Below are positions 17,906 through 63,700 of a DNA stretch of 64,000 nt, one piece after another. Position numbers and translations under genes: made by a program. Each line of letters opens with the position of its first letter. Position 1 is the first letter of the stretch. Source of the stretch: Trichosphaerium sp. ATCC 40318 (taxonomy: Eukaryota > Protista > Tubulinea); assembly GCA_038496445.1 (NCBI GenBank), contig JALMLS010000369.1, positions 124,001 through 188,000 of the forward strand, read 5' to 3'. The notes below the pieces were generated by a model. The model had not been told where the DNA came from and did not search any database. It saw only the letters and a list, made by a program, of their open reading frames with translations.

Positions 17906-18239
17906 AGTTACAGATAAAATATGATCCTTTTATTAATTAAACTCCAGAAACCAAGATAGCCTACAACCACGTGACGGTTGATTGTTTTCCAAAGTTTAAG
18001 ACGTTGTATCTTGAAAAGTAGATTTTTCTATTGAATTACTTGTTCTCGTTTTAAGGAAGGCTACTGGAATGTATATCCTGGCGTATCAAATAAAAATTAC
18101 TGTAACGTTTACCATCATAGCATATTAATTCCCAAAAAAGCACTTGGGTTTGCTAAACCCAACAAAGAAAATAATAAAAGAAATGTTATTTCAGTTTTAT
18201 GCTTTTCGGAACGTTGTACAGTAAACTATGACACCCTGT

Positions 18240-44066: not shown

Positions 44067-47000
44067 ATGCATGCTGTAGGCACGTGTTTATTTTATTAAT
44101 ATATTGGCGGACTTTAACTAGGTTAGTTAAATCAGGAAATCTGTTGCTATTAGTCTTTGCGAATCTTTTTGTTGTAGCATACTCGGCTGCTACACAGTTT
44201 GAGAGAGCAGGAGAGGCTGTTATGTATGGAAACAGTTCAAGAATTGTAAGTTCAAGAGCGTAACCCAAACAGAAGCCTAATGTATCTACAGCCTGCGCAG
44301 TTTGGCTTTTTTGGAGCTACCTCAAGTACAGCTGACACTGTTCCTATATTTGTTCGTGCCTATTTCAGTAGGCAACAAGGTGTAAAGCACTTTTTGGATA
44401 GCTGGACCTCGTCTTCGGCAAGTAGTTTACCAAATTCAGTTTTAATCATTCGTAGAATGCGATAGAACAGCATACAGCCTGTGAAAGTGAGTGTCTCACA
44501 CGCGTGAAACCTGGTGTAATATTAACGGAGAGCCCGTTCAATACGGGAGGATGGTCTATTAAAGAAGAAACACATGGTGTGCTTATCAAACATCGAGGAA
44601 CATCATTCGAAATGTTAAACACGTACTAAAGTGATTGTTTTTTAGTTGCCTATGCTTACCAATAAAAGCACTCGATTTCGAAGACCACCTCACCCTGGCT
44701 TGTTTGGCACCTTTTTCGATGTTATAGAAATATACGTTATTGAAGGGACGCTTGCTATTGCCAGGTAAGCGAAATTACAGTTACTTATGGATTGTTGATC
44801 ACTGTTCAAAGGCTTGTATTCTCTGATGGTATAATTATTGATATGATTCAAGTGGAAGATTCGTTTGATATGCCGACAGTAGCTAATTGTAGTGGTGCTC
44901 TTTGCGTTGATACAACCGATTTAATGTTTGGTAAGTTAATGTTCCTATTATGAGGTGCATTTACGCTTTGTAGTTGTTGATGCTTCTCAAAATGTGTTGA
45001 GTGATGAAAATTGTGAGGAAAGAGGTAAACGCGGAAAAGTTATTGTATTAACTCAAATTCAAGGATCAATGTGTACTCAAGGGCCTGGTGGATATGGTTC
45101 TTTCAATAGAGCATCATACGAAGAGTGTTGCACACACTTAAACTGGGACTTGTACTTTCAATTTATGATTGATGTGATCACTCCACTCAAACTTGGAGAG
45201 TATGGATATCGTACTGGTATCACGTTGTATCGAGATACAGCTCAAGTTGTATTGCCTTTGGGGAGTCACTCCAAATCTTACTTTCTCGAGCAACTCAACA
45301 ATACTCGATCGGTAAACTTAGTAGGCGGATGCCACAATGTCACAACCGGTAAGCATGATTCCCAACTTATAAGTATTTTTGTGTAATGTTAAATGTTGTC
45401 AAGGCCTTTCGGTTGCACGTGATCATTTCGATAGCCACGGAAGAAATGGACGAAATAAAAAAGTGATGATTGTCAATCAATACCATGGTTCCAAATGTGC
45501 TGGTTTTGATTCAAATGACAATATCACAAACACTCTCGAATCTGAGGTATCAAAGCAACATAATTTATATGGTATTGAGAAAATATAGGGATTTACAATT
45601 CACTCAATTTCAATCGGATCAACAGACTCCAATCTTCTACCACTTCCAAATACCGTCAATATCACAAACGCCATATTTCTGTCATCACGTGTTTTACCAA
45701 TTATTTCACCTCAAATATGTAAACGTGAGTAGAAAGAAAGCGCTTCTTTGTCACTTCTTCATTTTAATACTCTCCATAGAAGTACGAAGTTTGTGCGGCT
45801 CAACATGCAAAGCAGAATGTACATGCAAACAAGAATGTACATGTCAGAATGCCGGATGCGATGACGCAAATATATGTACAGCAAACAAATGCCGAAGTCC
45901 AGACGAAGGATGTCATTATCCTCAAAATGATATCTTCCCAAACCTTGATGGGCCAAACATACAATGTACACTTTTAGTTTGTTGTAGTGTTTGACAATTT
46001 GTTTAGGTGGCTCACATTCTTTTTGTAATCCAGATTTTTCATTATTTTTTGTACCACTTAAGGACTGTCAAAGTCGTATGCATTTAACCCCGTACTTTGT
46101 TAGCTGCTAATTTTTTTAAAAGCACCAAACGAATGTTTTTATAGCCTTCCATTTGAGTGCAGTGACTCTATAGCAATCCCATGTGACAGTCCTTGTCCTT
46201 CTGGCGATATATGTAACCTATCGTACTGTGATATATCAACTGGAACCTGCGTTACTGAAAAAAGAGTTCCTGGATCACCTGCATTTGTTTGTGAAGAAGG
46301 AGGATCACATACATTGGATTATTGTGACACAAACACTACCAACGAGTTTCCTGTTTCTAATAAGTTTCCAGGGTGTAAAACTGTGAATCTGTCAGATGTA
46401 CGCTAATGTACTTTATATCTTCACAAACCATAACTCTAGATATGCCAAGAACAAACACCACCATGTATGATATACAACCCAAACATAACAAGTTGGCACT
46501 TGGCTCCATTTCAAATTCCAGAAGCTCCAAATCAAACATTCTACAATCCAGAATGCATCTACGAACCTGATCCAAATTGTTTCAGTGATATACTCCCTCT
46601 CGCACCCACAACAATACCTCCCACAACCTCATCACCTACAACTACTCCACCGACAACACTACCTCCGACAACAAGTGCACCACCGACTTCAGCAACTATT
46701 GCAACAACTATCCCTTCATCTGGCGCTGAGTCCTCGGGGTCGTCAGTTGTTGGTACGACAAGGCATCTGATGATTAAAATCTAATTAGATGTAGTGATAG
46801 TAGTTGCGTGCGTTGTAGTTTTTCTACTACTGTTTGTTGTTGTTGGCCTTTTCATTTGTAACTACCATGTTCGTGGAAAACGTAAAGGCCAACCACAAGT
46901 GACAAGTATGACATCTGCTTCCTTGAAAGCAGGAGAGGATGCTCAAGTGTCACCTTATGGTTTTCTACCGGAACGGCTTTCAACTGTAGACGTTAATCTA

Positions 47001-48080
47001 AAATCTGTGAATATTAACTACGAGGACTTGATATTTGGCAAACAACTTGGTTTGTTTTAAAAAGAATGTATATGCGCTTAAACTATTTTTTAGGTGAGGG
47101 CAGTTTTGGGACCGTTATGCAAGCCGAGTACAAAGGAAAGAATGTTGCTGTCAAGATATCAAGCCTTGGCGCTGAAGAGAATCAGAATTTTTTAAGAGAG
47201 GTTAGTGAGACTTTGTTATGCCATTAACTATTGTTCACAGGTTGAAGTAAATATGAGTCTTGATCCTCATCCAAATATTGTTGGCACTTTTGGACTTTGT
47301 TTCCTGGATGGAAAACCAATGTTGGTATTGGAGTTTATGGCAAATGGATCGCTGGAAGAATTGTATAACACAAAGGAAGATGACTTTACATTCAATGAAA
47401 TCAAAACGTTTTTAAGTTCAATTGCAGAAGGGATGACTTTTCTTCATAAAAATAAGATCATTCATCGGTACGTTTAGGTTGCTTATTGATTGGGTTAATG
47501 ACATTGATTTAGGGATCTTGCATGCAGAAATATCTTGGTAGACAATTCCAATTAACCAACAAAACTGACCTTGTGTTTCTAGATATCAGAAGATAACGTT
47601 CTCAAGATAAGTGATTTTGGAATGTCAAGGTAAATATTCCGAAGGTAAATATTAGCATTGTCACTAATTTGGTTCAGAAAATCAGCAATCTCAGGAAAAG
47701 CACAAGAGACGAAGAACGGTATTGGACCAATTCGATGGATGAGTCCAGAGTCCATGCGAAAGTTGTATGAACCTAAAAGTGATGTAAGTCCAAACGCACT
47801 TCCAACAATATTGTTAATGGTTTCGCAGGTTTGGTCATTTGGAATGGTGATGTATGAGCTCATTTACAGGACAATTCCTTTTGGAGAAGTAGATGATTTG
47901 TTCGATCTTGCTGTTCGTATCAGAGATAAAGGATATACACCTGAATTGGATGATCGTGTTCATCAGCAATGGAAGAGTATCATGGATAACTGCTGGGCAT
48001 TTTCTTCTTCTGATAGACCAACTTTCAATAAGTTAAAAACATCCATTAGTAACGCAACTCAGTTCGTAACTAATGAGTAG
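44067..48080 (+). CDS. Receptor tyrosine kinase copy 2 (same architecture as copy 1)
   Basis: Signal peptide, DLMF|VVDASQN VWA, CDDANICTANKC, PTT stalk, TM IVVACVVVFLLLFVVVGLFIC, kinase GEGSFG/HRDLACRN/DFG/GPIRWMSPES. Confidence 0.9.
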
Positions 48081-48162
48081 CTTTAACCTGTGGCAGAATA
48101 GTACTTTTACTTTTCTTTTGCTAAGGTACTGTACCTTGTTGCTTATGTTGTAACAGCCCTTA

Positions 48163-50781
48163 ATGAGCATCACGTGGTACTTGTATGTACTCACTATCGT
48201 GTTACTTTTCCCTCAAACGCTTCAGCAACGTTATGTAAATAAAATATCAAAATCAGTGCGAGTATGTTGCCTGTAGCCTTACTACGCTTAAATAACGATA
48301 AAAATAGGGATTTAAAGAGTCACAAGCTCTAAGTATATACAGCGCTTCTGAAAATCCGCTAGCAGTGCCTCAAGATGTTTTCTCGGCGATGTATGAAGAC
48401 AATATAGCGTTATGGGGAGATATGCCAAAGAAAGACGCTTACGTTAATTATATGCGAACACAAACTGGAAATGTTGATAGCGCGAGGTAACTAATCACGT
48501 GACATATCAAAAAAAATTTTGAGAATTCCACGTGTAACGAAAAGGTTAAAAATTTTTTTAGGTTGCTTTTGGAATTCGGCATGGTTCCTTCTGTGAAAGC
48601 TTCGCAGTCTCCACTGCATGTTGCCATTGCAAAGGAGAGTGTTGACACTGTTGAAGAAATCCTTGAACAAAGTACGTGTTTGCAAAATTCACGTGATTAA
48701 TTGTTATTCGAAGGCACAAGTGTAGTTGTTATAGATCAAGCGGAGGATGATGGTGTAACGCCGTTAATATCAGCTGTTATGGTTGGCAACGTTGAGGTTG
48801 TCAAATTACTGCTTGGAGAGGTTCGTCAAATCCCTTGAGGATACGTTTGTTTTAATTTAACTGTAGGGTTCAGATACAGAAGCAACTGCAAGAAATGGTA
48901 TGAACCCTTTATTAGTTGCAGCGTCTATGAATCATGTTGAAGTTATAGAAGCACTTCTAGGTACTAGCCCACATAACATTATAGTTATTTAATCCAAATG
49001 TAGACTATGGCGCGTATATTGATGCAAGGCATTCATTTGCTGGATCTCACGCTCTTCACTTCGCTGCAGAAATGGATTGTGCTGAAGGTATTAGTAACAT
49101 TAGCTTATATTCAATGTTGTTTCTTACATTTAGCCAGCAATTAAAGTGCTTTGCGAAAGGGGAGCAGACGTTGAAGCTGAGAAAATTCATGGAGGCACAG
49201 CTCTTCATATTGCAGCTGAATCGAATCACCCTAAGGTTGTAAAAGAATTAATCACAACATGTAAGGCGGATACAGAGAAAAAGCTATTGAATGACACAAC
49301 ACGTACGCTCAAACAAGATCTCTACCTCAATCTTACAACAAAAAAGCATTGTATCTTGCAGCTTCAAAAGGAAATGTTGAGGTTGTAAAAATCCTCTTAG
49401 AACATCAAGCTAATACCGACTTTGTCATGCCAGTTGGTACTACTCTTGTAAAACTGAATGGTTTTAATGATATTCGATTCAGGTGTAATGTCACGTGCTG
49501 TTACTGCTCCGAAAGAAAAGGCTAAAAAAAATAGCATGGAAGAGTACTTTGCTTCACTTCATAACCCAGGTTCTAGTCCTTCCAGTAACAGTTTTGAAGC
49601 TGGTAATGGCGCTACTGCACTTCACGCAGCAGTTGAGAATGGTCATATAAAGGTAGTGAAGTTACTGCTTGATCATGGCGCACGGCAGTTACAGTCTATG
49701 GAAGGTACAGCCAATTAAAAATCTATTATTCTGATCTTCTAACATAGGAGCGACTCCACTTCATATCGCTGCACAGTATAATAGGCCAAAAATTGCAAAA
49801 CTGTTGATTAATAGTGGTGCCCAACTAAATGCACAGAGTACTCGAGATGGATCAACTGCGATACATATGGCTATGAGATCAAGCAAGGCACTCGTTGTAT
49901 TTCTTGGTTTTTTCTGATTGTCTTTACTAGAGTGTTTTGAAAGTACTATTAGATTCTGGAGCGGAGGTGTCTGTCCCAACGTTTGAAGGAGTTACAGCGC
50001 TTCACATGGCATTACATAGATCGCAGGATCAATTGGCGATAAAGTTTATTAAAGCTGGGGCAAACTTGAATGCAATGACATTACAAGGATACACTCCCCT
50101 TCATCTTGCTGTTGAAAGATCCGATCCTGGATTGGTTAAAATGATGCTTTCAAAAGGAGCAGACACTGAAAAGGTAAAGAAAAGCTTAGAATAACAAAGC
50201 AAAGAAGTGAAGACTTCGAATTCATCTCTCATAGTATTGTCTACTAACTTTAAGTCAGAAAACAGAGCAAGGCTTAACGCCTTTGATAATGGCAGTACGA
50301 TCTAATAATCCAAAAACTTTGTTAGTATTGCTCAAGCACGGTGCCAACACCGAAACAAAAATTGGTATGAAAGCAACAGCACTTCATCTTGCTGTTCAAA
50401 AGAAATATGAGAGTATTGTAAGATTGCTTGTTAAGTACAATGCAAACATTAATGCGAGATTGACAACTGGCCAAACACCTCTTTTCATTGCTTCAGAAGA
50501 TGGATTAGTTAATGTCGTCAAGTTGCTTTTGAAGAAGGGAGTGCGAGCTATAGATGTAAGAAATTCAGCAGGGCTGACGCCATATATGATGGCAGTAGCA
50601 AACCGTACGCTTAGAGGTGAAATAACACGTGTACACTTACAATATTTCAGGTCATTTTGAAGTTGCTGATCTCTTACTTAAAGCTGGTGCTGATAGAAAT
50701 GCAGTGGATAAAAAGGGACGAAGCATTGAAGAATTAATAATGCGAAAAAACATAGTGAAGCGCAATAGTGTCAAAACCTAA
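48163..50781 (+). CDS. Ankyrin-repeat protein (>12 repeats) with predicted N-terminal signal peptide/anchor
   Basis: Many G.TPLH.A/G.TALH.A repeats; spliced N-terminus MSITWYLYVLTIVLLFPQTLQQRYV...|GFKESQ reads open into the ankyrin exons. Confidence 0.85.
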
Positions 50782-50825
50782 TAATCTATTTACTGTTCAC
50801 ATTTTTGTGGTTTGTTATCTTTTTT

Positions 50826-53055
50826 CTATCTCCACAATAGTTCTATGGCGAGCACACAAACCAATAAAATAAAATGTACACCTAGAGCTGTTAAATACAT
50901 TACGTTATATACACGTACCAACAGTCGAACAAGAAGACGGTGGACCTTTTGTTGGCGCGGTAGTAGATATCGGCGGTACAGTCATCGGTGACATAGTAGC
51001 AGGTGAAAGCGTTGTTGGAGATACAGTATTTTGAGAACCAGTTGGAGGTATTGTACCTACACATGTGTAAATAAACCATAGGTGTTGAAAGACGTACAAT
51101 TTAAGCTCAATGGGAAGATATCATTTTGTGGAAAGTAACATCCTTCGTCTGGACTTCGACATTCGTTTGCTGTACACGAATTTGTGTCGTCGCATCTAGC
51201 ATTCTGACATGTACATTCTTGATTGCAAGTGCATTCTGCTTTGCATGCTGGGCCACACAAACTTCGTACTTCTGTTCCTGTGTAGTGTTAACCAAACGGT
51301 GAATGGTATTTTTCGTTACCTTGACATAATTCACTTTTAAAGGCCCGTAAAACACTTGATATAATGCTAATACGTGCAATGTTAATGTTGAAAGAAAATG
51401 GTAACACTTTATTAATTCCAATTCCGATTGTCAGTGAGTAAAGTGCAAATCCCTATTTTTTCTCAATAAATAAAATTGTGTTGCTTTGATACCTCAGATT
51501 CGAGAGTGTTTGTGATATTGTCATTTGAATCAAAACCATCACATTTGGAACCACGATATTGATTGACAATCATCACTTTTTTATTTCGTCCATTTCTACC
51601 ATATTTATCGAAATGATCACGTGCAACCGAAAGACCTTGAAATACAAATATTAGATTCAACAACTCCGGTGAAATAACAAATCTACCTGTTGTAACATCA
51701 TCACATCCTCCCAGTAAGTTGATAGTACGAATGTTGTTGAGTTGTTCAAGAAAGTAAGATTTGGAGTGGCTCCCCAAAGGCAATACAACTTGAGCTGTAT
51801 CTCGATACAACGTGATACCAGTACGATATCCATACTCTCCAAGTTTGAGTGGAGTGATCACATCAATCATAAATTGAAAGTACAAGTCCCAGTTTAAGTG
51901 TGTGCAACACTCTTCGAGTGATGATCTATTGAAATAACCATATCCACCGCTAGGCCCTTGACTACACTCGGATGCTAATGTATTTTTGTTAAGTAACAAA
52001 TAAATAAGGCTCTATTTATACCTGCTGTACCACACGTCAAAGTGTGTAAGACATTTTGAGAAGCACCAACAACTACAAAGCGTAAACACACTTGTGGAGA
52101 TGAATAAGTTAAAAGTTGTAAGAACTGACCAAACATCAAATCTGTTGTATCAATGCAAAGGGCATCAGTACAATTATCCATTACTGGAAAGTTGCTGGAT
52201 GTTGGACTCCCAATATCAACAATAACATCATCTGAAAATACAATCCTATTTTCAAAAAATGAGTGACAACGAGACTAACACTTTATAATGCAATACGCTT
52301 CTCCTTACCTGGCTAGTTCCGTTGTTCCTTCAATGTAGTATAACTCTACAACATCTAAAAATGTACCAAATACACTTAGATCCCGTTCTCTTTGGAACCG
52401 AGTCCTTTAATAAGCAACAATTAGCATCACAATAATCCAAAATACCAAACTGTTGTACGTATTTACAACAATGTGAGAAGGTAATGTTGATCGATGCTTG
52501 ATTGTCACGTGGTGCGTTTCTTCTTTGTCAAGCCATGACATGGCATCAAATGGGTTCTCACTCAGACCGATATTGTCTTTCACTCGTCTGAGGCATTGAG
52601 TTTCGCATACTGTGTACTGTACAAGCGACCTCTAAGAACGATTAAAATAGAAGTTGTAATAAATAGTCGACATGCCGAAGAAGATGACCAGTTTTCTCCA
52701 AAGTACTTCTCAGTACTTTCTCTATTGAAGTAGACGTCTGCAGTTTCGATAGTATCATTTTGACTAAACACGTGATACCCAAAAGATCCATATTGTACAG
52801 CCTTGAAAGCACGTGTCAGTTGGTCAACGTTTAATGGATATTTAAAGCGCGCCGTAAAACTGTACGTACAATACTTGTATTTTTTCCATACATAACGGCT
52901 TCTGTGTCAAGATCATAGCTTGATGCGTCTACCATAAACTGTAACAAGACTGACAATATTATTATTTGTAAGGCACCTAATCAGCGGTATGTTATACTCA
53001 ACATGGATACAATCGTGGTTGTTCTACTTATACACAACGTACGTATCGAATACAT
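50826..53055 (-). CDS. Receptor-family copy 3: kinase-less short ectodomain (N-domain, VWA, one Cys repeat, stalk), predicted GPI anchor
   Basis: Signal peptide MYSIR|ALQIIILSVLLQFMVDAS; VWA paralogous to copies 1/2; ends PSSCSTV|GVHFILLVCVLAIELLWR* with no cytoplasmic domain. Confidence 0.8.
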
Positions 53056-53071
53056 GTGAACAATCTTTTTT

Positions 53072-53707
53072 ATGAATGAAGATGTGGAACATTTCAAGCG
53101 TTTGGTTGGACTGAACAAGACTGTCAATATCGAAGGACACAATAGGCAACAACAACAACAATGGCGAGTAGCAATCAAAACAACAACAGCAATGCAAAAA
53201 GACTTAAAGTGGTGGCATGATATGATGGACCTATGGAATGGTAAGGCAATTTTACTATGTCCATTACCATTATCAAAAGGTTTGTTTCAAACAGACGCTT
53301 CAAACATAGCAGCAGGCGCGTTTTTAAATGGTTCATGGCTTATCCATGTCTTTACAAAAGAAGAAAAAAAATGGCATATCAATGTTAAGGAGATGTATGC
53401 GGTGTGGATGGCAATAAAAGAATGGAAACACTTATTTGCCAATAAACTTATCAACAATTTATTAGTGGATAATACAGGAGTAGTTGCATCAGTCAACAGA
53501 CTGGTAATGCGCAATTCCAGAGCTATGAAGATGATATACGATCTGCATAAATGGTCGGCAGCATTCGGATTCCGGCTTACTGCAACTTGGATTCCCTCAG
53601 AAGAAAATACCCTTGCTGACGCTTTAAGTAGACTGCAAACACAACAATTTTATACCAAAGCAAATCAATTAGGCTTTTTTAATGTAACAGGACGTTTTAT
53701 TAAATAA
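53072..53707 (+). CDS. DIRS/Ngaro-type RNase H with upstream RT-RH tether
   Basis: DLKWW...WNG tether; FQTDAS, HINVKEM, VDNTG, WIPSEENTLADALSR (D-E-D-D catalytic set). Confidence 0.9.
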   Translation: MNEDVEHFKRLVGLNKTVNIEGHNRQQQQQWRVAIKTTTAMQKDLKWWHDMMDLWNGKAILLCPLPLSKGLFQTDASNIAAGAFLNGSWLIHVFTKEEKKWHINVKEMYAVWMAIKEWKHLFANKLINNLLVDNTGVVASVNRLVMRNSRAMKMIYDLHKWSAAFGFRLTATWIPSEENTLADALSRLQTQQFYTKANQLGFFNVTGRFIK

Positions 53708-53794
53708 ATTTATTTAGAATTCTTAACAGAAGTACAAAACAAACGTATTAGAATCCTGCGAGAGGCCTATCCCAGAAGTACAAGCAATAATAGA

Positions 53795-54775
53795 ATGTCA
53801 GCTATAAAAGCAGTAGTTATTGCACTGCTCAAGCTCAATATTCCACAAAGTCAATGGATGCCTTTGAGCTCTCAACACATGCAACTGGTAGTAGCATTGT
53901 GGGCAAAAGAATCAGCAGAGGAAGAGGGGTTAAAGCCTGACACTATCCGCGTATACTTCTCACATTGGGCATGGCTTTCGAAAAGATTAGGTTATGCTGA
54001 CCCAAGAGAAAATTGTGTATTATATCATGATATGTTAAGAGGCCTTAAAAGGAAGGTAGGAGATAGAGTAGACAGAAAACGACCTATGACAGCAGTGATG
54101 TTATTGAACATAAGAAAAAAAGTGGATTTGCGACAAAACAAGGATCTGGTTTATTGGACAGCAGCATTAATGGCATTTTGGGGAATGCTAAGGATAGGTA
54201 ACTTGGTTCCTCGTAAAGTAGCAGAATTTAGTGTCGATAGACACGTATCAAGGTCCAACATAGAGTTTGACGGTGATACTTGGTGGTTTACACTTAGACA
54301 AACAAAAACAATTCGATTCCGTGAGAGAAAACACGTAATACCGTTTCTGGATATGGAAGGTCACCCTTTATGCCCTACAACAGCGATAAACAGACTAATT
54401 AAACAGGTCAAACCCATACAAGGAAAATCCCTGTTTAGACACAAGAACAACGGAAGATGGTCACAAATAACATACTCTAAATTTGTAAAATGGACCAAAC
54501 TAATGGTTTCAAAGATGGTAAATAATACTAAAGAATATGCTGGACACTCATACAGGCGTGGCGGAGCAACACATGCAGCTGCAGCAGGAGTTCCTAATGA
54601 ATGGATAAAATATATTGGCGATTGGAGCTCAGATGCATATCAAATATACATTGTAAAAAACAAAGAAGACAGATTAATAGCACCAAAATTAATGTTTCAA
54701 TGGCTTAAACATGGCCTTGATCATACAGATCGCGCTGGGGAGGATGGTCAACCTCAACCATGGCTAGAGGATTGA
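53795..54775 (+). CDS. Tyrosine recombinase (DIRS-type)
   Basis: FWGMLRIGNL (R), RQTKT (K), LCP, HSYRRGGAT (HxxR), GDWSSDAYQIY (W, Y); the frame is open for another 29 codons upstream to 53708. Confidence 0.93.
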   Translation: MSAIKAVVIALLKLNIPQSQWMPLSSQHMQLVVALWAKESAEEEGLKPDTIRVYFSHWAWLSKRLGYADPRENCVLYHDMLRGLKRKVGDRVDRKRPMTAVMLLNIRKKVDLRQNKDLVYWTAALMAFWGMLRIGNLVPRKVAEFSVDRHVSRSNIEFDGDTWWFTLRQTKTIRFRERKHVIPFLDMEGHPLCPTTAINRLIKQVKPIQGKSLFRHKNNGRWSQITYSKFVKWTKLMVSKMVNNTKEYAGHSYRRGGATHAAAAGVPNEWIKYIGDWSSDAYQIYIVKNKEDRLIAPKLMFQWLKHGLDHTDRAGEDGQPQPWLED

Positions 54776-54780
54776 CGTGG

Positions 54781-55192
54781 GTAGAATAAATCCGCTCGTG
54801 TGGCTACGCTAGAGCCACCAAAGACTGAGCGTCTTTCCTCCCAAGCGCGTCTCCCTTATATTGACAACGTTGTCCAATCTAATGAATGAAGATGTGGAAC
54901 ATTTCAAGCGTTTGGTTGGACTGAACAAGACTGTCAATATCGAAGGACACAATAGGCAACAACAACAACAATGGCGAGTAGCAATCAAAACATCCCCTCA
55001 CCCTCCCTAAAATCCTTTTCTTTTTCTTGTAAAAATTTTTTCTTTATTTTTCCTTCAAACACATTTGCAATTCACACGAGTGTTCTTAAATGTAGAATAA
55101 ATCCGCTCGTGTGGCTACGCTAGAGCCACCAAAGACTGAGCGTCTTTCCTCCCAAGCGCGTCTCCCTTATATTGACAACGTTGTCCAATCTA
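54781..55192 (+). repeat. B1-A2-spacer-B2 split-direct-repeat terminus of the YR element
   Basis: 101-bp B copies and 111-bp A copies appear identical by eye; B carries AATAAA and the palindrome GACAACGTTGTC. Confidence 0.9.
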
Positions 55193-55588
55193 ATTGCAAG
55201 TTTTGCAGGGTACACAAAAAATACTGCAAAAAAAATGCAAATCTGAGTAAAAAGATGCTTTCAAACCTTGCTCGCTTTATATATCTATTTAATTATCGAT
55301 TCAAAATAATTTGAATGCGGATTGGTGTGTACTAAAATGTCGAAAAAATGTCAAAGTGATATTGAACTGTTCGCCACAAAGGGAGACAACTGGGTTATGG
55401 CGCTCAGTCGCCGCTAGGCTCTGCCCCCCCCAAACCCCCCCTGAAAGGGGGGCTTTCTAAATAGTTCCTATGGCATAATATAGGATAATTAGTGTGCCGA
55501 ATTTTCGACTTTTTTTTGACAAAGTTCTACATATTTGGGTTTCCCTGCGGATTAAGTCACCAAAACTAGGGGAAAAAACGGTTTGTTC

Positions 55589-55925
55589 TAGTACTGTTAA
55601 CGGTCCGACTCAACTCAACTCGACTTTTTTTGAGAAAACGGTCTGAGTCGACTCAAAAAAAAATCATCTGAAGGTATCTACATCATTTTTTTTCTGGAGT
55701 TTCACTGTCACAAGCATCCATGTGTGGCCACACACCTGATTTGGTGGAATACACCCTTTTAGCCATCAATCAGACACTGTGTGATTGCAACAATACGAGA
55801 AAAAGAACTTAAAACCAGGTTTTTACAATTTAGATGTGTTTTTTTAAGTCGACTCAACTCAGTCCGACTCGACTTTTTGTAAAATCAGTCCGACTCGACT
55901 TAAGACTGAGTCATTAACAGTACTA
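55589..55925. mobile_element. hAT-like MITE (337 bp)
   Basis: TIR TAGTACTGTTAA...TTAACAGTACTA; 8-bp TSD gtttgttc/gattgttc (1 mismatch); subterminal (C)GACTC motifs at both ends. Confidence 0.8.
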
Positions 55926-56109
55926 GATTGTTCGTTCAATCTACTCAAGTTGGAAGATGGTTTATTAATACTTTAGGAGAGGAGTGAGAACAATGAATGT
56001 AAAATTGCTAGGCTGACGCCATACCAGTAGCAAATAACATGCACACTAGTTCTTGAAGTTGTTCATCACCACGATATTTTTTATTTACTGTAAACATTTT
56101 ATTGTTTTC

Positions 56110-59100
56110 TTATCTCCATAATAGTTCTATTGCAAGTGCACTAATCGCTATAATAACATGCATTTCTAAATCTGTTACTAAGGGTGTACTGTTAGAAACA
56201 CGTACCAATAGCTGAACAAGACGATCGTGGACCATTCGTTGGTGCCGTAGTAGGTGTTGGCTGTACAGTGATAGGTGGTATAGTATCTGGAGAAATAGTT
56301 GTAGGGGTTGTAGGTATTGTTGTAGGCGCAAGAGTTGTTGGAGGCATTGTAGTTGGTACTAGAGGCAATATAGGCTCGAAACAACTTGGATCAGGTTCAT
56401 AGATGCATTCTGGATTGTAGAAAGTTTGATTTGGAGCTTCAGGAATTTGAAATGGAGCCAAGTGCCAACTTGTTAGACTTGAATCATATATCATACACGG
56501 AGGTGTCCGTGATGAGCAAATCTAAAAATTCTTAACCTTTTTTTTACAAGAAAATTCACGAATGACGTACATCTGAGAGTTGAACAGATACACAACCAAA
56601 AACAAATTCTTTGCTAGGATCACAATATTGTAAGACAAAGGAGTCTCCTTCTTCACAAATAAATGCAGGTGATCCAGGAACTCTTTTTTCGGTAATACAC
56701 GTGCCAGTTGTAACATCGCAGTAAGATATGTTGCATAAATCAGAAGATACACAATCAGGGGAGCATGGTATTTCGGTATTGGGAATACACTCTTCTCCAT
56801 TCTCATAGAAACATTGCAACGGCGCTAAAATTTTCAGATAGTAGAAAGTAAGTTGAAACATACGGGCTCTACAAAATGTTCTAGCAGAAGCGTTTGTTCT
56901 TTCAGGATTGCAAAAAGAAGGTGAACCGCCTGCGCATGATTGTTAAAAAACCACAGGGTTGCAAAGACGTACAATGTACGCTTATTGGAATAACAATGTT
57001 TGGGAAAATTTCATTTGGTGGGTAATGACATCCTTCGTCTGGACTTCGGCATTTGTTTGCTGTACAAGGGTTTGCATCATCGCATCCGGCATTATAACAT
57101 GTACATTCTTGATTGCACGTGCATTCTGCTTTGCATGATGAGCCACACAAACTTCGTACTTCTAAACAAGGTATTTGCTAAAGGTGAATGATATTCTTTG
57201 TTACCTTGACACAATTCACTTTTAAAGGCCCGCAGAACACTTGATATAGTGCCAATGCCTGCGATTCCGATGTTGAAAGAAATTGGTAACACTTCAGCAG
57301 ATGTTCCGATTGTCAGCGAGTAAAGTGCAAATCCCTATTTTTTCTCAATAAATAATATTGTGTTGGTTTGGATACCTCAGATTCGAGAGTGTTTGTAATA
57401 CTGTTATTAGGATCAAATTCACCACATTTGGGACCACGATATTGATTGACAATCATCACTTTTTTATTTCGTCCATTTCTACCATATGTATTGAAATGAT
57501 CACGAGCAACCGAAAGACCTTGAAATACAAATATTAGATTCAACAACTCCGGTGAAATAACAAATCTACCTGTTGTAACATCATCACATCCTCCCAGTAA
57601 GTTGATAGTACGAATGTTGTTGAGTTGTTCAAGAAAGTAAGATTTGGAGTGGCTCCCCAAAGGCAATACAACTTGAGCTGTATCTCGATACAACGTGATA
57701 CCAGTACGATATCCATACTCTCCAAGTTTGAGTGGAGTGATCACATCAATCATAAATTGAAAGTACAAGTCCCAGTTTAAGTGCGTGCAACACTCTTCGA
57801 ATGATGCTCTGTTGAAAGAACCATATCCACCGCTAGGTCCTTGAAGACACTCACGTGCTATTTTATTTCATTTAAGGGGGCACGCTGAGATGTGCAGAAA
57901 TTGTTCAAATCGGCTCAAATTTTCGTGCCTATATCTTTGACATGAGGGCTTTTGAAAAACCCAACTTTTAGCGTGTGCCTTTTTGTGACGTTTTTTTGTT
58001 GCAAAAGTTTTTTTTTTCAAAAAACGACTGCATTTTTTCAATCTTTCTGTTTAAAAGCACATTTGTTCAAAACTACGTTACCCATAGCATCTACACACGT
58101 AGTACATGCTATGGGTACACTTTCAATAAAAAGTCTCAATTTGAAAGCAAAAAAAATAACGAATTTGCTCTACACCACCTAAAATGCGTCTCCAAGTGGT
58201 GAAATAGCGGACGAATAGCTTTAAAAGTTGTTTCAAATCCGTGTAATTAAGGTCAAAAAGTTGAGAAAAAAAATGACATTTCGGGCTTTGAACTCAAGTA
58301 ATCAATCTACACAGTTCGCTATCCTATTTTTTCAGCGTTTTACGCGATTTTAGATGGGTTTAAAGCCCGAAGATGCCCGTGGGGCTAAGGTCATTTCATT
58401 CTCAGCGTGCCCCTTAAGTAACAAATAAATAAGGCTCTATTTATACCTGCTGTACCACACGTCCAAGTGTGTAAGACATTTTGAGAGGCACCAACAACTA
58501 CAAAGCGTAAACACACTTGTGGAGATGAATAAGTTAAAAGTTGTAAGAACTGACCAAACATCAAATCTGTTGTATCAACGCAAAGGGCATCAGTACAATT
58601 ATCCATTACTGGAAGGTTGCTGGATGTTGGACTCCCAATATCAACAATAACATCATCAGAAAATACAATCCTATTTAAAAAAGTGAATCACGTTACATTT
58701 AGCTTCTCCTTACCTGGCTAGTTCCGTTGTTCCTTCAATGTAGTACAACTCTACAACATCTAAAAATGTACCAAACACACTTAGATCCTGTTTTCTTTGG
58801 AACCGAGTCCTTTAATAAGCAACAATTAGCATCACAATAATCCAAAATACCAAACTGTTGTACGTGTTTAAAAACATGTGAGAAGGTAATGTTGATCGAT
58901 GCTTGATTGTCACGTGGTGCGTTTCTTCTTTGTCAAGCCATGACATGGCATCAAATGGGTTCTCACTCAGACCGATATTGTCTTTCACTCGTCTGAGGCA
59001 TTGAGTTTCGCATACTGTGTACTGTACAAGTGACCTCTACTAACGATTAAAATAGAAGTTGTAACATAAATTAATAGTCAACATGCCGAAGAAGATGACC

Positions 59101-59467
59101 AGTTTTCTCCAAAGTACTTCTCAGTACTTTCTCTATTGAAGTAGACGTCTGCAGTTTCGATAATGTCATTTTGACTAAACACGTAATAGCCAAAAGATCC
59201 ATATTGTACAGCCTTGAAAGCACGTGTCAGTTGGTCAACGTTTAATGGATATTTAAAGTGCACCCGTAAAACTGTACGTACAATACTTGTATTTTTTCCA
59301 TACATAACGGCTTCTGTGTCAAGATCATAGCTTGATGCGTCTACCATGAACTGTAACAGGACTGACAATATTATTATTTGTAAGGCACCTAATCAGCGGT
59401 ATGTTATACTCAACATGGGTACAATCGTGGATGTTCTACTTATACACAACGTACGTATCGAATACAT
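56110..59467 (-). CDS. Receptor-family copy 4: kinase-less full ectodomain, predicted GPI anchor; MITE in one intron
   Basis: Same N-terminus as copy 3; VWA; two Cys-rich modules; WHLAPFQIPEAPNQTFYNPEC block; PTT stalk; ends PRSSCSAI|EMHVIIAISALAIELLWR*. Confidence 0.8.
57876..58413. mobile_element. Non-autonomous TTAA-specific DNA transposon, Kolobok-like (538 bp)
   Basis: TTAA at 57872-57875 and 58414-58417; TIR GGGGCACGCTGAGA / TCTCAGCGTGCCCC; the paralogous intron in copy 3 (~51989) has a single TTAA; purine 5' termini favour Kolobok over piggyBac (CCY). Confidence 0.8.
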
Positions 59468-59764: not shown

Positions 59765-60716
59765 TTATTCTGTTCTTTCATTCGTGATAATTGGTTTTGA
59801 GCTCTCCTTTGCGTTATTTATATCAATCTCTAAATCCTTGAAGCTTGGCCTATCAGAACAAGAAAACGCCCAACATTGTGACATAATATGTTGCCAATGA
59901 GGGTGGACTAGATCACCGACCCCAGGTGTATATCCTTCTTCTCTGATCCGCATTGCAAGATCAAACAAGTCTGGTACTTGTCCAAATGGTCTTGTCTTGT
60001 AAACAAGCTCCCACATTAGCATTCCAAATGACCACACCTAAGTCCGTTTGTTTTCTCAATACAAGCTCAATATGTATTTAACTTACATCGCTTTTAGGTT
60101 CATACAACCTTTTTATTGACTCAGGACTCATCCATCTAATTGGTCAAAAGTTTGTTTTTGTTTTTTTAGCTGATCCTGAAAGTGTCGTTTTTCTGAACTT
60201 GATAAGCAAAGGTGATAAATATGTTTTTTATTGAGTACCTTGACATTCCGAAATCGCTTATTTTGATAACATCGTCTTCTGATATCTATCATTGCACTGT
60301 CAATCATGTATCAAAAAACAGAACACTACGTACCAATACATTTCTACATGCAAGATCTCTACAAACAATATTTAATTAGTTTCATAATGACAAGCTGCTA
60401 AACTACCGATGTATGATCATATTTTGATGAAGAAAAGTCATCCCTGATGCGATTGAACTTAAAAACGTTTTGATCTCATTGAATTTAAAATCATCGTTTT
60501 TGCTCTCATACAAGTCTTCCAGCGATCCATTTGCCATAAACTCCAATACCAACATTGGCTTAGCATCAGCGATACAAAGACCAACAGTACCAACAATATT
60601 CGGATGAGGATCGAGACTCATATTTACTTCAACCTGTGAGCAATAGTTAATAATAACACAACATAGCCTATCTGTCTCACCTCTCGTAAAAAGTTTTGAT
60701 TTGCTTCAGGGCCAAG
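59765..60716 (-). pseudogene. Kinase-domain fragment of a further receptor paralog (copy 5), 5'-truncated, with an in-frame stop
   Basis: SLGPEANQNFLRE...HRDLACRN...NF*PIRWMSPES (TGA at ~60144 where paralogs have GGA); breaks off at ~60716. Confidence 0.7.
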
Positions 60717-63700
60717 AGAACGGGATCTAAGTGTATTTGGTACATTTTTTAGATGTTGTAGAGTTATACTACATTGAAGGAACAACGGAACTAGCCAGGT
60801 AAGGAGAAGCGTATTGCATTATAAAGTGTTAGTCTCGTTGTCACTCATTTTTTGAAAATAGGATTGTATTTTCAGATGATGTTATTGTTGATATTGGAGT
60901 CCAACATCCCGAAGCCTTCCAGTAATGGATAATTGTACTGATGCCCTTTGCATTGATACAACAGATGTGATGTTTGGTCAGTTCTTACAACTTTTAACTT
61001 ATTCATCTCCACAAGTGTGTTTACGCTTTGTAGTTGTTGGTGCTTCTCAAAATGTCTTACACACTTTGACGTGTGGTACAGCAGGTATAATAGAGCCTTA
61101 TTTATTTGTTACTTAACAAAAATACATTAGCATCCGAGTGTAGTCAAGGGCCTAGCGGTGGATATGGTTATTTCAATAGAGCATCACTCGAAGAGTGTTG
61201 CACACACTTAAACTGGGACTTGTACTTTCAATTTATGATTGATGTGATCACTCCACTCAAACTTGGAGAGTATGGATATCGTACTGGTATCACGTTGTAT
61301 CGAGATACAGCTCAAGTTGTATTGCCTTTGGGGAGTCACTCCAAATCTTACTTTCTTGAGCAACTCAACAATATTCGATCTAAACTTAGTAGGGAGGATG
61401 TGAAATGTTACAACAGGTAGATTGTTATTTCAAGAGTTGTTGAATTAATATTTGTATTCAAGGCCTTTCGGTTGCACGTGATCATTTCAATAGCCACGGA
61501 AGAAATGGACGAAATAAAAAAGTGATGATTGTCAATCAATACCATGGTTCCAAATGTGCTGGTTTTGATTCAAATGATATCACAAACACTCTCGAATCTG
61601 AGGTATCAAAGCAAAATAATTTATATGGTATTGAGAAAATATAGGGATTTACAATTCACTCAATTTCAATCGGATCAACAGACTCCAATCTTCTACCACT
61701 TCCAAATACCGTCAATATCACAAACGCCATATTTCTGTCATCACGTGTTTTACCGATTATTTCACCTCAAATATGTAAACGTGAGTAGAAAGAAAGCGCT
61801 TCTTGTCATCTGCTTCATTTTAATACTCCATAGAAGTACGAAGTTTGTGCGGCTCAACATGCAAAGCAGAATGTACATGCAAACAAGAATGTACATGTCA
61901 GAATGCCGGATGCGATGACGCAAATATATGTACAGCAAACAAATGCCGAAGTCCAGACGAAGGATGTCATTATCCTCAAAATGATATCTTCCCAAACCTT
62001 GATGGGCCAAACATACAATGTACACTTTTAGTTTGTTGTAGTGTTTGACAATTTGTTTTTAGGTGGCTCACATTCTTTTTGTAACCCAGATTTTTCATTA
62101 TTTTTTGTACCACTTAAGGAATGTCATAGTCGTATGCATTTAACCTCGTACTTTGTTAGCTGCTAATTTTTTTAAAAGCACCAAACGAATGTTTTTATAG
62201 CCTTCCATTTGAGTGCAGTGACTCTATAGCAATCCCATGTGACAGTCCTTGTCCTTCTGGCGATATATGTAACCTATCGTACTGTGATATATCAACTGGA
62301 ACCTGCGTTACTGAAAAAAGAGTTCCTGGATCACCTGCATTTGTTTGTGAAGAAGGAGGAGCACATACATTGGATTATTGTGACACAAACACTACCAACG
62401 AATTTCCTGTATCTAACAAGTTTCCAGGGTGTAAAGCTGTGAATCTGTCAGATGTACGCTAATGTACTTTATATCTTCACAAACCATATCTCTAGATATG
62501 CAAAGAACAAACACCACCATGTATGATATACAACCCGAACATAACAAGTTGGCATTTGGCTCCATTTCAAATTCCTGAAGCTCCAAATCAAACATTCTAC
62601 AATCCAGAATGTCTCTACGAACCTGATCCAAGTTGTTTCAGTGATGTACTCCCTCTCGTACCCACAACAATACCTCCCACAACCTCATCACCTACAACTA
62701 CTCCACCTACAACACTACCTCCGACAACAAGTGCACCACCGACTTCAGCAACTATTGCAACAACTATCCCTTCATCTGGCGCTGAGTCCTCGGGGTCGTC
62801 AGTTGTTGGTACGACAAGGCATATGATGATAAAAATCTAATTAGATGCAGTGATAGTAGTTGCGTGCGTTGTAGCTTTTCTACTACTGTTTGTTGTTGCT
62901 GGACTTTTCATTTGTAACTACCATGTTCGTGGAAAACGTAAAGGCCAACCACAAGTGACAAGTATGACGTCTGCTTCCTTGAAAGCAGGAGAGGATGCTC
63001 AAGTGTCACCTTATGGTTTTCTACCTGAACGGCTTTCAACCGTAGACGTTAATCTAAAATCTGTGAATATTAACTACGAGGACTTGATATTTGGCAAACA
63101 ACTTGGTTTGTTTTAAAAAGAATGTATATGCGCTTAAACTATTTTTTAGGTGAGGGCAGTTTTGGGTCCGTTATGCAAGCCGAATACAAAGGAAAGAATG
63201 TTGCTGTCAAGATATCAAGCCTTGGCGCTGAAGAGAATCAGAATTTTTTAAGAGAGGTTAGTGAGACTTTGTTATGCCATTAACTATTGTTCACAGGTTG
63301 AAGTAAATATGAGTCTTGATCCTCATCCAAATATTGTTGGCACTTTTGGACTTTGTTTCCTGGATGGAAAGCCAATGTTGGTATTGGAGTTTATGGCAAA
63401 TGGATCGCTGGAAGACTTGTATAACACAAAGGAAGATGACTTTACATTCAATGAGACCAAAACGTTTTTAAGTTCAATCGCGGCAGGGATGACTTTTCTT
63501 CATAAAAATAAGATCATTCATAGGTACGTTTAGATTGCTTATGATTGGGAATGACATTGATTTAGGGATCTTGCATGCAGAAATATCTTGGTAGACAATT
63601 CCAATTAACCAACAAAACTGACCTTGTGTTTCTAGATATCAGAAGATAACGTTCTCAAGATAAGTGATTTTGGAATGTCAAGGTAAATATTCCGAAGGTA

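Follow-up and report, generated by a model that had tools for sequence, protein, structure and literature searches.

Background

The closest described counterpart of the gene family treated here comes from Entamoeba, in which approximately 90 transmembrane kinases (EhTMKs) display a Cys-rich ectodomain of the type common to Igl, and in which one EhTMK family includes many 5'- or 3'-truncated members, some without a kinase (PMC2880585). Igl, the intermediate subunit of the Gal/GalNAc lectin of Entamoeba histolytica, is anchored by glycosylphosphatidylinositol (GPI) (PMC11537071). Here we describe a cluster of related genes in a 64,000-nucleotide stretch of the genome of Trichosphaerium sp. ATCC 40318 (contig JALMLS010000369.1, positions 124,001 to 188,000), the whole of which was analyzed and is referred to below as the window. 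Two of these genes (C1 and C2) are predicted to encode receptors with an extracellular von Willebrand factor A (VWA) domain, a transmembrane (TM) segment and a tyrosine-kinase-type domain, and two others (C3 and C4) encode the same kind of ectodomain without a kinase and end in a tail laid out like a GPI signal. An earlier note on this DNA had likened the cluster to Brassica SRK/SLG and to the Tgr proteins of Dictyostelium; these comparisons stand as analogies only, and EhTMK/Igl is the closer precedent (PMC2880585, PMC11537071).

By analogy, the Entamoeba TMK/Igl system already supplies the concept of one ectodomain family used both in receptor kinases and in a GPI-type protein. What is new at this locus is the combination of a VWA domain with a second N-terminal domain (hereafter the N-domain), the tyrosine kinase (TK)-type catalytic domain, the tight linkage of the genes, and a truncation and a chimera that are both visible. 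The likeness to EhTMK/Igl lies within Amoebozoa and consists in one Cys-rich ectodomain type being present in receptor kinases and in a kinase-less, GPI-anchored protein; it is a likeness of architecture, by description, and no common family was seen in Pfam. However, the Entamoeba ectodomain is composed of CXXC repeats and has neither a VWA domain nor an N-domain, the Entamoeba kinases are of tyrosine-kinase-like (TKL) or dual type, and only here are both forms linked in one cluster.

Lineage-specific radiations of receptor tyrosine kinases (RTKs) in Amoebozoa offer a second comparison. Protostelium aurantium has 167 TKs and short introns with a median of 46-50 nt (PMC5804921), Acanthamoeba and Physarum have 21 and 4 TKs (PMC5804921, PMC4758236), and the median intron of Physarum is 231 nt (PMC4758236). 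These receptors share with C1 and C2 a single pass through the membrane, a TK-type catalytic domain and an ectodomain for adhesion or protein interaction, and the short introns of Protostelium are a further point of resemblance; in contrast, the Physarum median does not fit the introns of C1-C4, and the main texts describe neither a VWA plus N-domain ectodomain nor linked kinase-less paralogs (PMC5804921, PMC4758236). Plant pairs of receptor-like kinases and receptor-like proteins (RLK/RLP), as well as Brassica SRK/SLG, resemble the cluster in that an ectodomain was duplicated at a single locus to give genes with and without a kinase, with the kinase-less form acting as a co-receptor or modulator. 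The plant systems nevertheless differ in their RLK/Pelle Ser/Thr kinases and their S-domain or leucine-rich repeat ectodomains, in the secretion of SLG, and in that polymorphism and function have been demonstrated. Dictyostelium TgrB1 and TgrC1 are likewise products of adjacent amoebozoan genes and surface proteins of one family, but they have IPT/TIG ectodomains and no kinase, and the role of the Tgr proteins rests on extreme allelic polymorphism.

Gene models and paralogy

The window is eukaryotic DNA of approximately 37% G+C, contains no Ns, and represents one haplotype. Comparison of the window with itself by blastn yields six related stretches, with matches of 0.8-3.1 kb at 72-94% identity and E = 0, and the paralogy of these copies is beyond chance. 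Five of the six (C1-C5) were aligned. The C2 model was built exon by exon, its exon boundaries were projected onto C1, C3 and C4 with a few junctions corrected by eye, and all models were translated; the splice models in all copies thus derive from sequence alignment. The 20 introns of C2 measure 38-55 nt, and all but one, which is GC..AG, are GT..AG; the C2 boundaries, once projected, give one uninterrupted open reading frame (ORF) in each of the other three genes. The predicted splice sites of C1-C4 are strongly supported because the C2 boundaries also open a single frame in three paralogs that are 20-30% different in their exons.

C2 occupies positions 44067-48080 on the plus strand and is an intact receptor gene of 21 exons encoding 1041 residues, as judged from its exon table, Pfam matches and neighbors in the PDB; its VWA domain spans approximately 44900-45724, its TM exon 46795-47049 and its kinase exons 47094-48080. 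C1 (13789-17905, minus strand, with its ATG on the 17905 side) is an intact receptor gene as well, with 21 exons and 1055 residues, documented by its model, translation and alignments. Its product reads, in order, signal peptide, N-domain, VWA domain (with the motif DASQN), Cys-rich modules 1 and 2, Thr/Pro stalk, TM segment and TK-type kinase. The intact kinase-less genes both lie on the minus strand: C3 (50826-53055) has 13 exons and encodes 539 residues, and C4 (56110-59467) has 15 exons and encodes 711; their tail exons, at 50826-50887 and 56110-56177, both end in AIELLWR*. In each of the four genes the ATG stands in a tiny first exon, and the next exon encodes the signal peptide. At the protein level C1 and C2 are 71% identical and C3 and C4 86%, and identity between the two pairs is approximately 59-60%.

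These models bear out much of what the earlier note had read from the DNA. The ends of the C1 model agree exactly with the limits that the note had assigned to its first copy, and the outer limits of its main segment, 44067 and 59467, turn out to be the start codons of C2 and C4. Its description of four apparently intact paralogs with a shared architecture is correct insofar as all four ORFs are open through every exon, but C3 is without Cys-rich module 2. Two fragments that it took for further members of the family are indeed related copies; both, however, are pseudogenes, C5 being a frameshifted chimera of C3 and C2 and C6 carrying a TGA.

The donor of intron 3 is GC (GCAAGT or GCATGT) in C2 (44418), C3 (52675) and C4 (59086), and GTAAGT in C1 (17548). 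Intron 14 of C1 can be read either as GC-AG (40 nt) or as GT-AG (82 nt), and the frame is kept either way. To judge from these donors, GC-AG introns seem to be tolerated in this genome.

The shared ectodomain

The order common to C1-C4 is a signal peptide, an N-domain of approximately 190 residues, the VWA domain, Cys-rich module 1, Cys-rich module 2 with a pre-stalk module, and the Thr/Pro stalk. In the kinase-less C3/C4 the N-terminus, comprising the signal peptide, reads MYSIRALQIIILSVLLQFMVDASS. The pre-stalk module is very conserved; in C3, half of it is missing together with Cys-rich module 2, and this deletion of approximately 2.5 exons is in frame, a new acceptor keeping the frame open. 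Searches with contiguous exon pieces returned no Pfam family at E<=1 for either the N-domain or the Cys-rich modules.

Contiguous exon pieces of the VWA domain match Pfam PF00092 over profile positions 15-73 with 19.1-19.8 bits and E of approximately 1e-3, the cut-off being 23.8 bits. When the domain was used as a phmmer query against 1.84 billion representative sequences, eight proteins were matched in all. Seven are long proteins with four to seven matched stretches each (E 1.9e-11 to 4.6e-5), and the three of these that were checked each contain 6-8 Pfam VWA domains; the eighth is a 107-residue metagenome fragment with 46% identity. Because proteins so matched carry multiple Pfam VWA domains, we assign the family ectodomain a divergent VWA domain. 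The receptor family is almost unrepresented in public protein data. The only outside relative found is on the contig from which the 107-residue fragment derives, a 988-bp sequence (38.6% G+C) of JGI metagenome 3300044452 (L001:65-950), which keeps the exon order of the family: VWA exon 8 is followed, after an intron at the matching site, by exon 9 and Cys-rich module 1, with approximately 40-48% amino acid identity. The contig shows that a relative of this organism lives in the environment. When metagenome contigs were scanned with the exon-8 alignment as a pattern, no further relative was confirmed.

Extracellular VWA domains serve in adhesion or ligand capture in single-pass receptors such as Dictyostelium Sib and metazoan ANTXR1/2 and in the integrin I-domains, all of which have a complete metal ion-dependent adhesion site (MIDAS) and no kinase domain. 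Here, in contrast, the first MIDAS motif is D-A-S-Q-N at best, in C1 and C2, and G-A-S-Q-N in C3 and C4, as also in C5. The candidate MIDAS Thr (in VTTG) is conserved, and the strand that usually bears the last MIDAS Asp appears, from mapping by eye, to read VMIVNQY. The complete site (DxSxS ... T ... D) thus appears to be lacking from every copy.

An N-domain piece (59081-59392, C4 exons 2-3) was also compared by its ESM-Atlas features, and its nearest clusters were the CLCA N-terminal domain and other zincin peptidases; the resemblance to CLCA is weak (score 0.89, 148 shared features) and falls under the tool's own reliability marks. CLCA proteins carry a VWA domain beside an N-CLCA domain. 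A CLCA-like identity, combining an N-CLCA zincin with VWA, was nonetheless rejected, there being no HExxH in any copy and no Pfam CLCA match at E<=1 for the exon pieces.

The kinase of C1 and C2

In C1 and C2 the stalk is followed by a TM segment and by a TK-type kinase domain that is catalytically complete by its motifs, which are G(E/D)GSFG, VAVK, HRDLACRN, DFG and P(I/V)RWMSPE. The earlier note had both genes continuing into a TM segment and an HRDLACRN kinase, and both models do so with all catalytic motifs in place. Relative to the TK signatures HRDLAARN and P-x-x-W-x-A-P-E, the kinase is one residue off in each (C for A and S for A). It scores 57-59 bits against Pfam PK_Tyr_Ser-Thr, and the nearest PDB chains are CSK, FAK, PTK7, FGFR, InsR, MET and JAK, with LIMK next. 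The activation loop is without tyrosine. On the strength of motifs and nearest structures, the label "tyrosine-kinase-type" appears justified for this predicted kinase.

The kinase-less ends of C3 and C4

The stalk exon of C3 and C4 ends in ...SSCS(A/T)(I/V), with a phase-1 GTACG donor identical to that of C2. After a short last intron, the tails of the two genes read ...SSCSTV(G/ALG)VHFILLVCVLAIELLWR and ...SSCSAI(E/VTDLE)MHVIIAISALAIELLWR. The tail exon aligns with the TM exon of C1 and C2 and contributes 14-16 mostly hydrophobic residues that end in LAIELLWR and a stop, and this ending is identical in C3 and C4 though the residues before it differ. The stop sits at the membrane/cytosol boundary, at the point where C1 and C2 run on with WNYTKR/CNYHVRGKRKG, that is, with basic stop-transfer residues. 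The C-terminal hydrophobic 17-mer has a Kyte-Doolittle hydropathy of 2.0-2.7 vs 3.7 for the TM helices of C1 and C2. By inspection and hydropathy, C3 and C4 display the sequence features of GPI-anchored proteins, namely a signal peptide, the small residues SSCS, of the kind expected at and around an omega site some 8-12 residues upstream of the hydrophobic stretch, a spacer of 5-9 residues, and a hydrophobic end closing in WR* with no cytosolic tail. Translations and hydropathy hence bear out the earlier description of an end with small residues, a hydrophobic tail and a GPI-signal layout; the tail is a putative GPI signal, for which a minimal TM anchor or secretion would be the alternatives.

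In Fc-gamma-RIIIA/B and NCAM, metazoan proteins of the Ig superfamily whose anchoring is biochemically proven, a TM form gives rise to a GPI-type form when it is cut short where the hydrophobic segment ends. The predicted truncation of C3 and C4 falls at a like position.

Homology between C3 and C4 extends approximately 30-40 bp beyond the stop and then ends. Since stop and 3' flank are shared, the truncated form, with a 3' end of its own, predates the C3/C4 duplication. On their strand, a tblastn search of the window for TM and kinase exons came up empty downstream of both C3 and C4. What follows C3 on its 3' side is an ankyrin-repeat gene on the other strand and then the convergent 3' end of C2; C4 is followed by 0.9 kb of unique sequence, the DIRS-like element described below, and C3. 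Two other arrangements were considered and dismissed. Onward splicing of C3 and C4 finds no kinase exons downstream: those of C6 are upstream of C4, and C2 runs toward C3 from the opposite strand. C4 and C6 cannot form one split gene either, since on the minus strand the kinase fragment comes before the ectodomain, the reverse of the order required.

Selection and gene conversion

Values of dN/dS, the ratio of non-synonymous to synonymous substitution rates, were computed between paralogs by the Nei-Gojobori method, the comparison of paralogs being a weak proxy for allelic tests. The values point to purifying selection everywhere measured. The ectodomain gives 0.34-0.43 in every pair, or 0.26-0.43 at the widest, and the kinase 0.24; single regions lie between 0.05 (pre-stalk) and approximately 0.7, the exception being a C-terminal VWA block of 45 codons with approximately 1.0 between the C1/C2 type and the C3/C4 type. 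No region has a dN/dS clearly above 1 among the paralogs, as would mark diversifying selection. Divergence is greatest in the N-domain (dN approximately 0.45, dS saturated), and yet C3 and C4 hardly differ there (dN 0.02).

Constraint on the kinase-less genes individually was assessed from private substitutions, defined as changes in one lineage at positions where its sister and the other copies agree, approximately 24% of which are expected to be synonymous without constraint. C3 has 15 synonymous and 17 non-synonymous private substitutions (p=0.004) and C4 has 23 and 35 (p=0.006), a synonymous excess in both cases. The excess therefore argues that each kinase-less gene has probably been under purifying selection.

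Identity along the genes is mosaic, ranging from 47 to 99% with introns included. C1 and C2 alternate between approximately 50% and 94-99%, and C3 and C4 are 95-98% identical to each other over their 5' halves, in exons and introns alike. As the mosaic pattern extends through introns, it indicates gene conversion between copies, not protein-level constraint. An additional observation concerns VWA exon 8, approximately 200 nt of which (45154-45330 in C2) are near identical in five copies, synonymous sites too, between flanks of 50-75% identity; this block is a candidate conversion hot spot or a site of nucleotide-level constraint.

A probable retained kinase-less subfamily and alternative readings

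The locus is a real, rearranging receptor family, evident directly in its gene structures, domains, truncation point, selection pattern and mosaicism. Our favored explanation, to which we assign a probability of roughly 0.6, is that this conversion-prone family retains a kinase-less, surface-tethered or secreted subfamily serving as co-receptor, decoy or adhesin. For C3 and C4 we infer transcription, the anchoring mode, a ligand and a decoy or co-receptor role. In this intron-rich protist the genes would form a cluster that evolves by birth and death and belongs to a lineage-restricted family of surface receptors, with C1 and C2 as type I receptors that have one TM helix and a mucin-like Thr/Pro stalk. 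A single ancestral event may have introduced the stop at the cytosolic end of the TM exon along with a separate 3' end, and the resulting kinase-less gene would then have been duplicated into C3 and C4 and kept by purifying selection. The highly diverged N-domain, together with the VWA domain, is proposed to bind an extracellular ligand or surface. C1 and C2 would signal through activation of their kinases, and C3 and C4 would display the same kind of ectodomain on the surface, by a GPI or minimal TM anchor, or release it, and in so doing modulate signaling as co-receptor or decoy or serve as pure adhesins. Gene conversion would homogenize the VWA core, Cys-rich and kinase blocks while the N-domain, stalk, TM segment and juxtamembrane region diverge, and unequal recombination together with transposon insertions would give rise to the pseudogenes C5 and C6.

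Several findings weigh against this explanation. The DIRS-like element lies approximately 22 bp upstream of the C3 ATG and interrupts the promoter region, C3 has suffered its internal deletion, C4 carries a miniature inverted-repeat transposable element (MITE) in intron 7, and the MIDAS Asp is replaced by Gly in both C3 and C4. Furthermore, functional paralogs outside the sample could, by conversion, have given these two genes the look of purifying selection, and C3 and C4 diverge to a similar degree in exons and introns (9.0% vs 10.7%). The first four findings, along with the presence of the clearly pseudogenic C5 and C6 next door and the high identity of the C3 and C4 5' halves down to their introns, would suit a view in which C3 and C4 are young, unexpressed truncated duplicates becoming pseudogenes, their frames still open owing to recent origin and gene conversion. 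We consider this possible but doubtful, as thirteen and fifteen exons are open with all splice sites intact, whereas C5, at 95-100% identity to its donors, already has three frameshifts. Moreover, the private changes of both C3 and C4 are enriched for synonymous ones, the C3 deletion is in frame with a usable acceptor, and the stop and 3' flank common to both genes make the truncated form older than their duplication. A further difficulty for a tethered product is the length of the last intron of C3 and C4, which with the first acceptor is just 28 and 31 nt, below all other introns of the family (38-69 nt). If so short an intron were retained, the proteins would stop just after the stalk in ...SSCSAIGTCF* and ...SSCSTVGTCI*, without the hydrophobic tail, and would be secreted ectodomains. 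This outcome strikes us as unlikely, given that the next in-frame acceptors yield introns of 40 and 37 nt, inside the family range, with the same tail, and that ...LAIELLWR* is identical in both copies despite the differing residues that precede it.

The earlier note had proposed a candidate self/non-self recognition locus. Read strongly, this would be a polymorphic locus for kin recognition or plasmodial fusion, with receptor and kinase-less partner as a matched receptor-ligand pair in the manner of TgrB1/TgrC1 or SRK/SLG. In favor of this, signaling and ectodomain-only genes are linked here, the N-domain has diverged strongly, conversion, chimeras and transposons keep the cluster in flux, and the molecules behind myxomycete allorecognition have not yet been identified (PMC11445841). 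Yet dN/dS is below 1 everywhere outside the 45-codon VWA block, the N-domains of C3 and C4 are scarcely different, and nothing in the window is specific to self/non-self recognition; in addition, amoebozoan genomes can hold very many RTKs with adhesive ectodomains (167 TKs in Protostelium aurantium; PMC5804921), and belonging to such a family does not point to kin recognition in particular. We therefore regard the proposal as very improbable. Its most explicit version is a shade more remote again: in a fusion system of plasmodial slime-mold type, N-domain/VWA receptors would signal through their TK on meeting matching or non-matching kinase-less tethered partners, and conversion and recombination, of which the chimera C5 could be an instance, would create new specificities. 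Were allorecognition the function, the cluster would be part of a long-sought somatic-fusion system.

Under the favored explanation of a retained kinase-less subfamily, and provided that C3 and C4 are expressed, the locus would be a compact, sequence-defined case outside animals and plants of a TK receptor family with kinase-less, membrane-tethered ectodomain genes at the same locus, where one can see the point of truncation, the pattern of selection and a recombinant of the two forms. The family also extends the ectodomains known from protist RTKs by one of VWA type, and C1-C4 are candidates that can be tested for a part in adhesion, prey sensing or kin recognition in an amoebozoan-like organism.

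Pseudogenes, inserted elements and neighboring features

C5 (60714-64000, plus strand, continuing past the window end) is a 5'-truncated, chimeric receptor pseudogene identified by alignment and a frameshift check. It is nearly full length, starts inside exon 5 and has frameshifts in exons 5, 6 and 8; approximately 60714-61220 is 96-99% C3-like, and from approximately 61370 on the sequence is 88-100% C2-like. Two of the frameshifts are in short homopolymers, where sequencing errors are possible in principle, but the loss of the 5' part is structural. C6 (59777-60713, minus strand) is a 3' kinase fragment, likewise a pseudogene, consisting of the end of exon 16 and exons 17-21; it has approximately 60% amino acid identity to C1 and C2, and its TGA is in the activation loop. 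C6 and C5, on opposite strands, are joined head-to-head at 60713/60714, exon 16 of one copy abutting exon 5 of the other, a junction that reads as an inversion or recombination breakpoint.

The DIRS-like element (53072-55194, plus strand) is 2.1 kb long and contains RNase H and tyrosine recombinase ORFs. Its internal repeats are 100% identical, and the insertion is therefore very recent. Past the element, from 55195 on, comes the flank AAAACTTGCAAT, which is uninterrupted in the region upstream of C4; a duplication boundary at the edge of the element was considered and discarded, since the flank runs on beyond it, as after a simple insertion. The MITE (57877-58413, no strand assigned) is 537 bp in length and was recognized as an insertion relative to all other copies and by its inverted repeat. 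It has perfect 14-nt terminal inverted repeats (GGGGCACGCTGAGA) and TTAA-type flanks, is non-autonomous, and enlarges C4 intron 7 from the normal 47 nt to 589 nt; no second copy is present in the window.

An ankyrin-repeat coding exon (50283-50660, plus strand; Pfam Ank, E 3e-19) lies between C2 and C3, whose 3' ends point toward each other. Lastly, C1 and C2 each have a motif, GTCACGTG, at 65-85 bp before the start codon (at 17970 and 43985); it is not seen at the corresponding distance in C3 and C4 and may be a promoter element.

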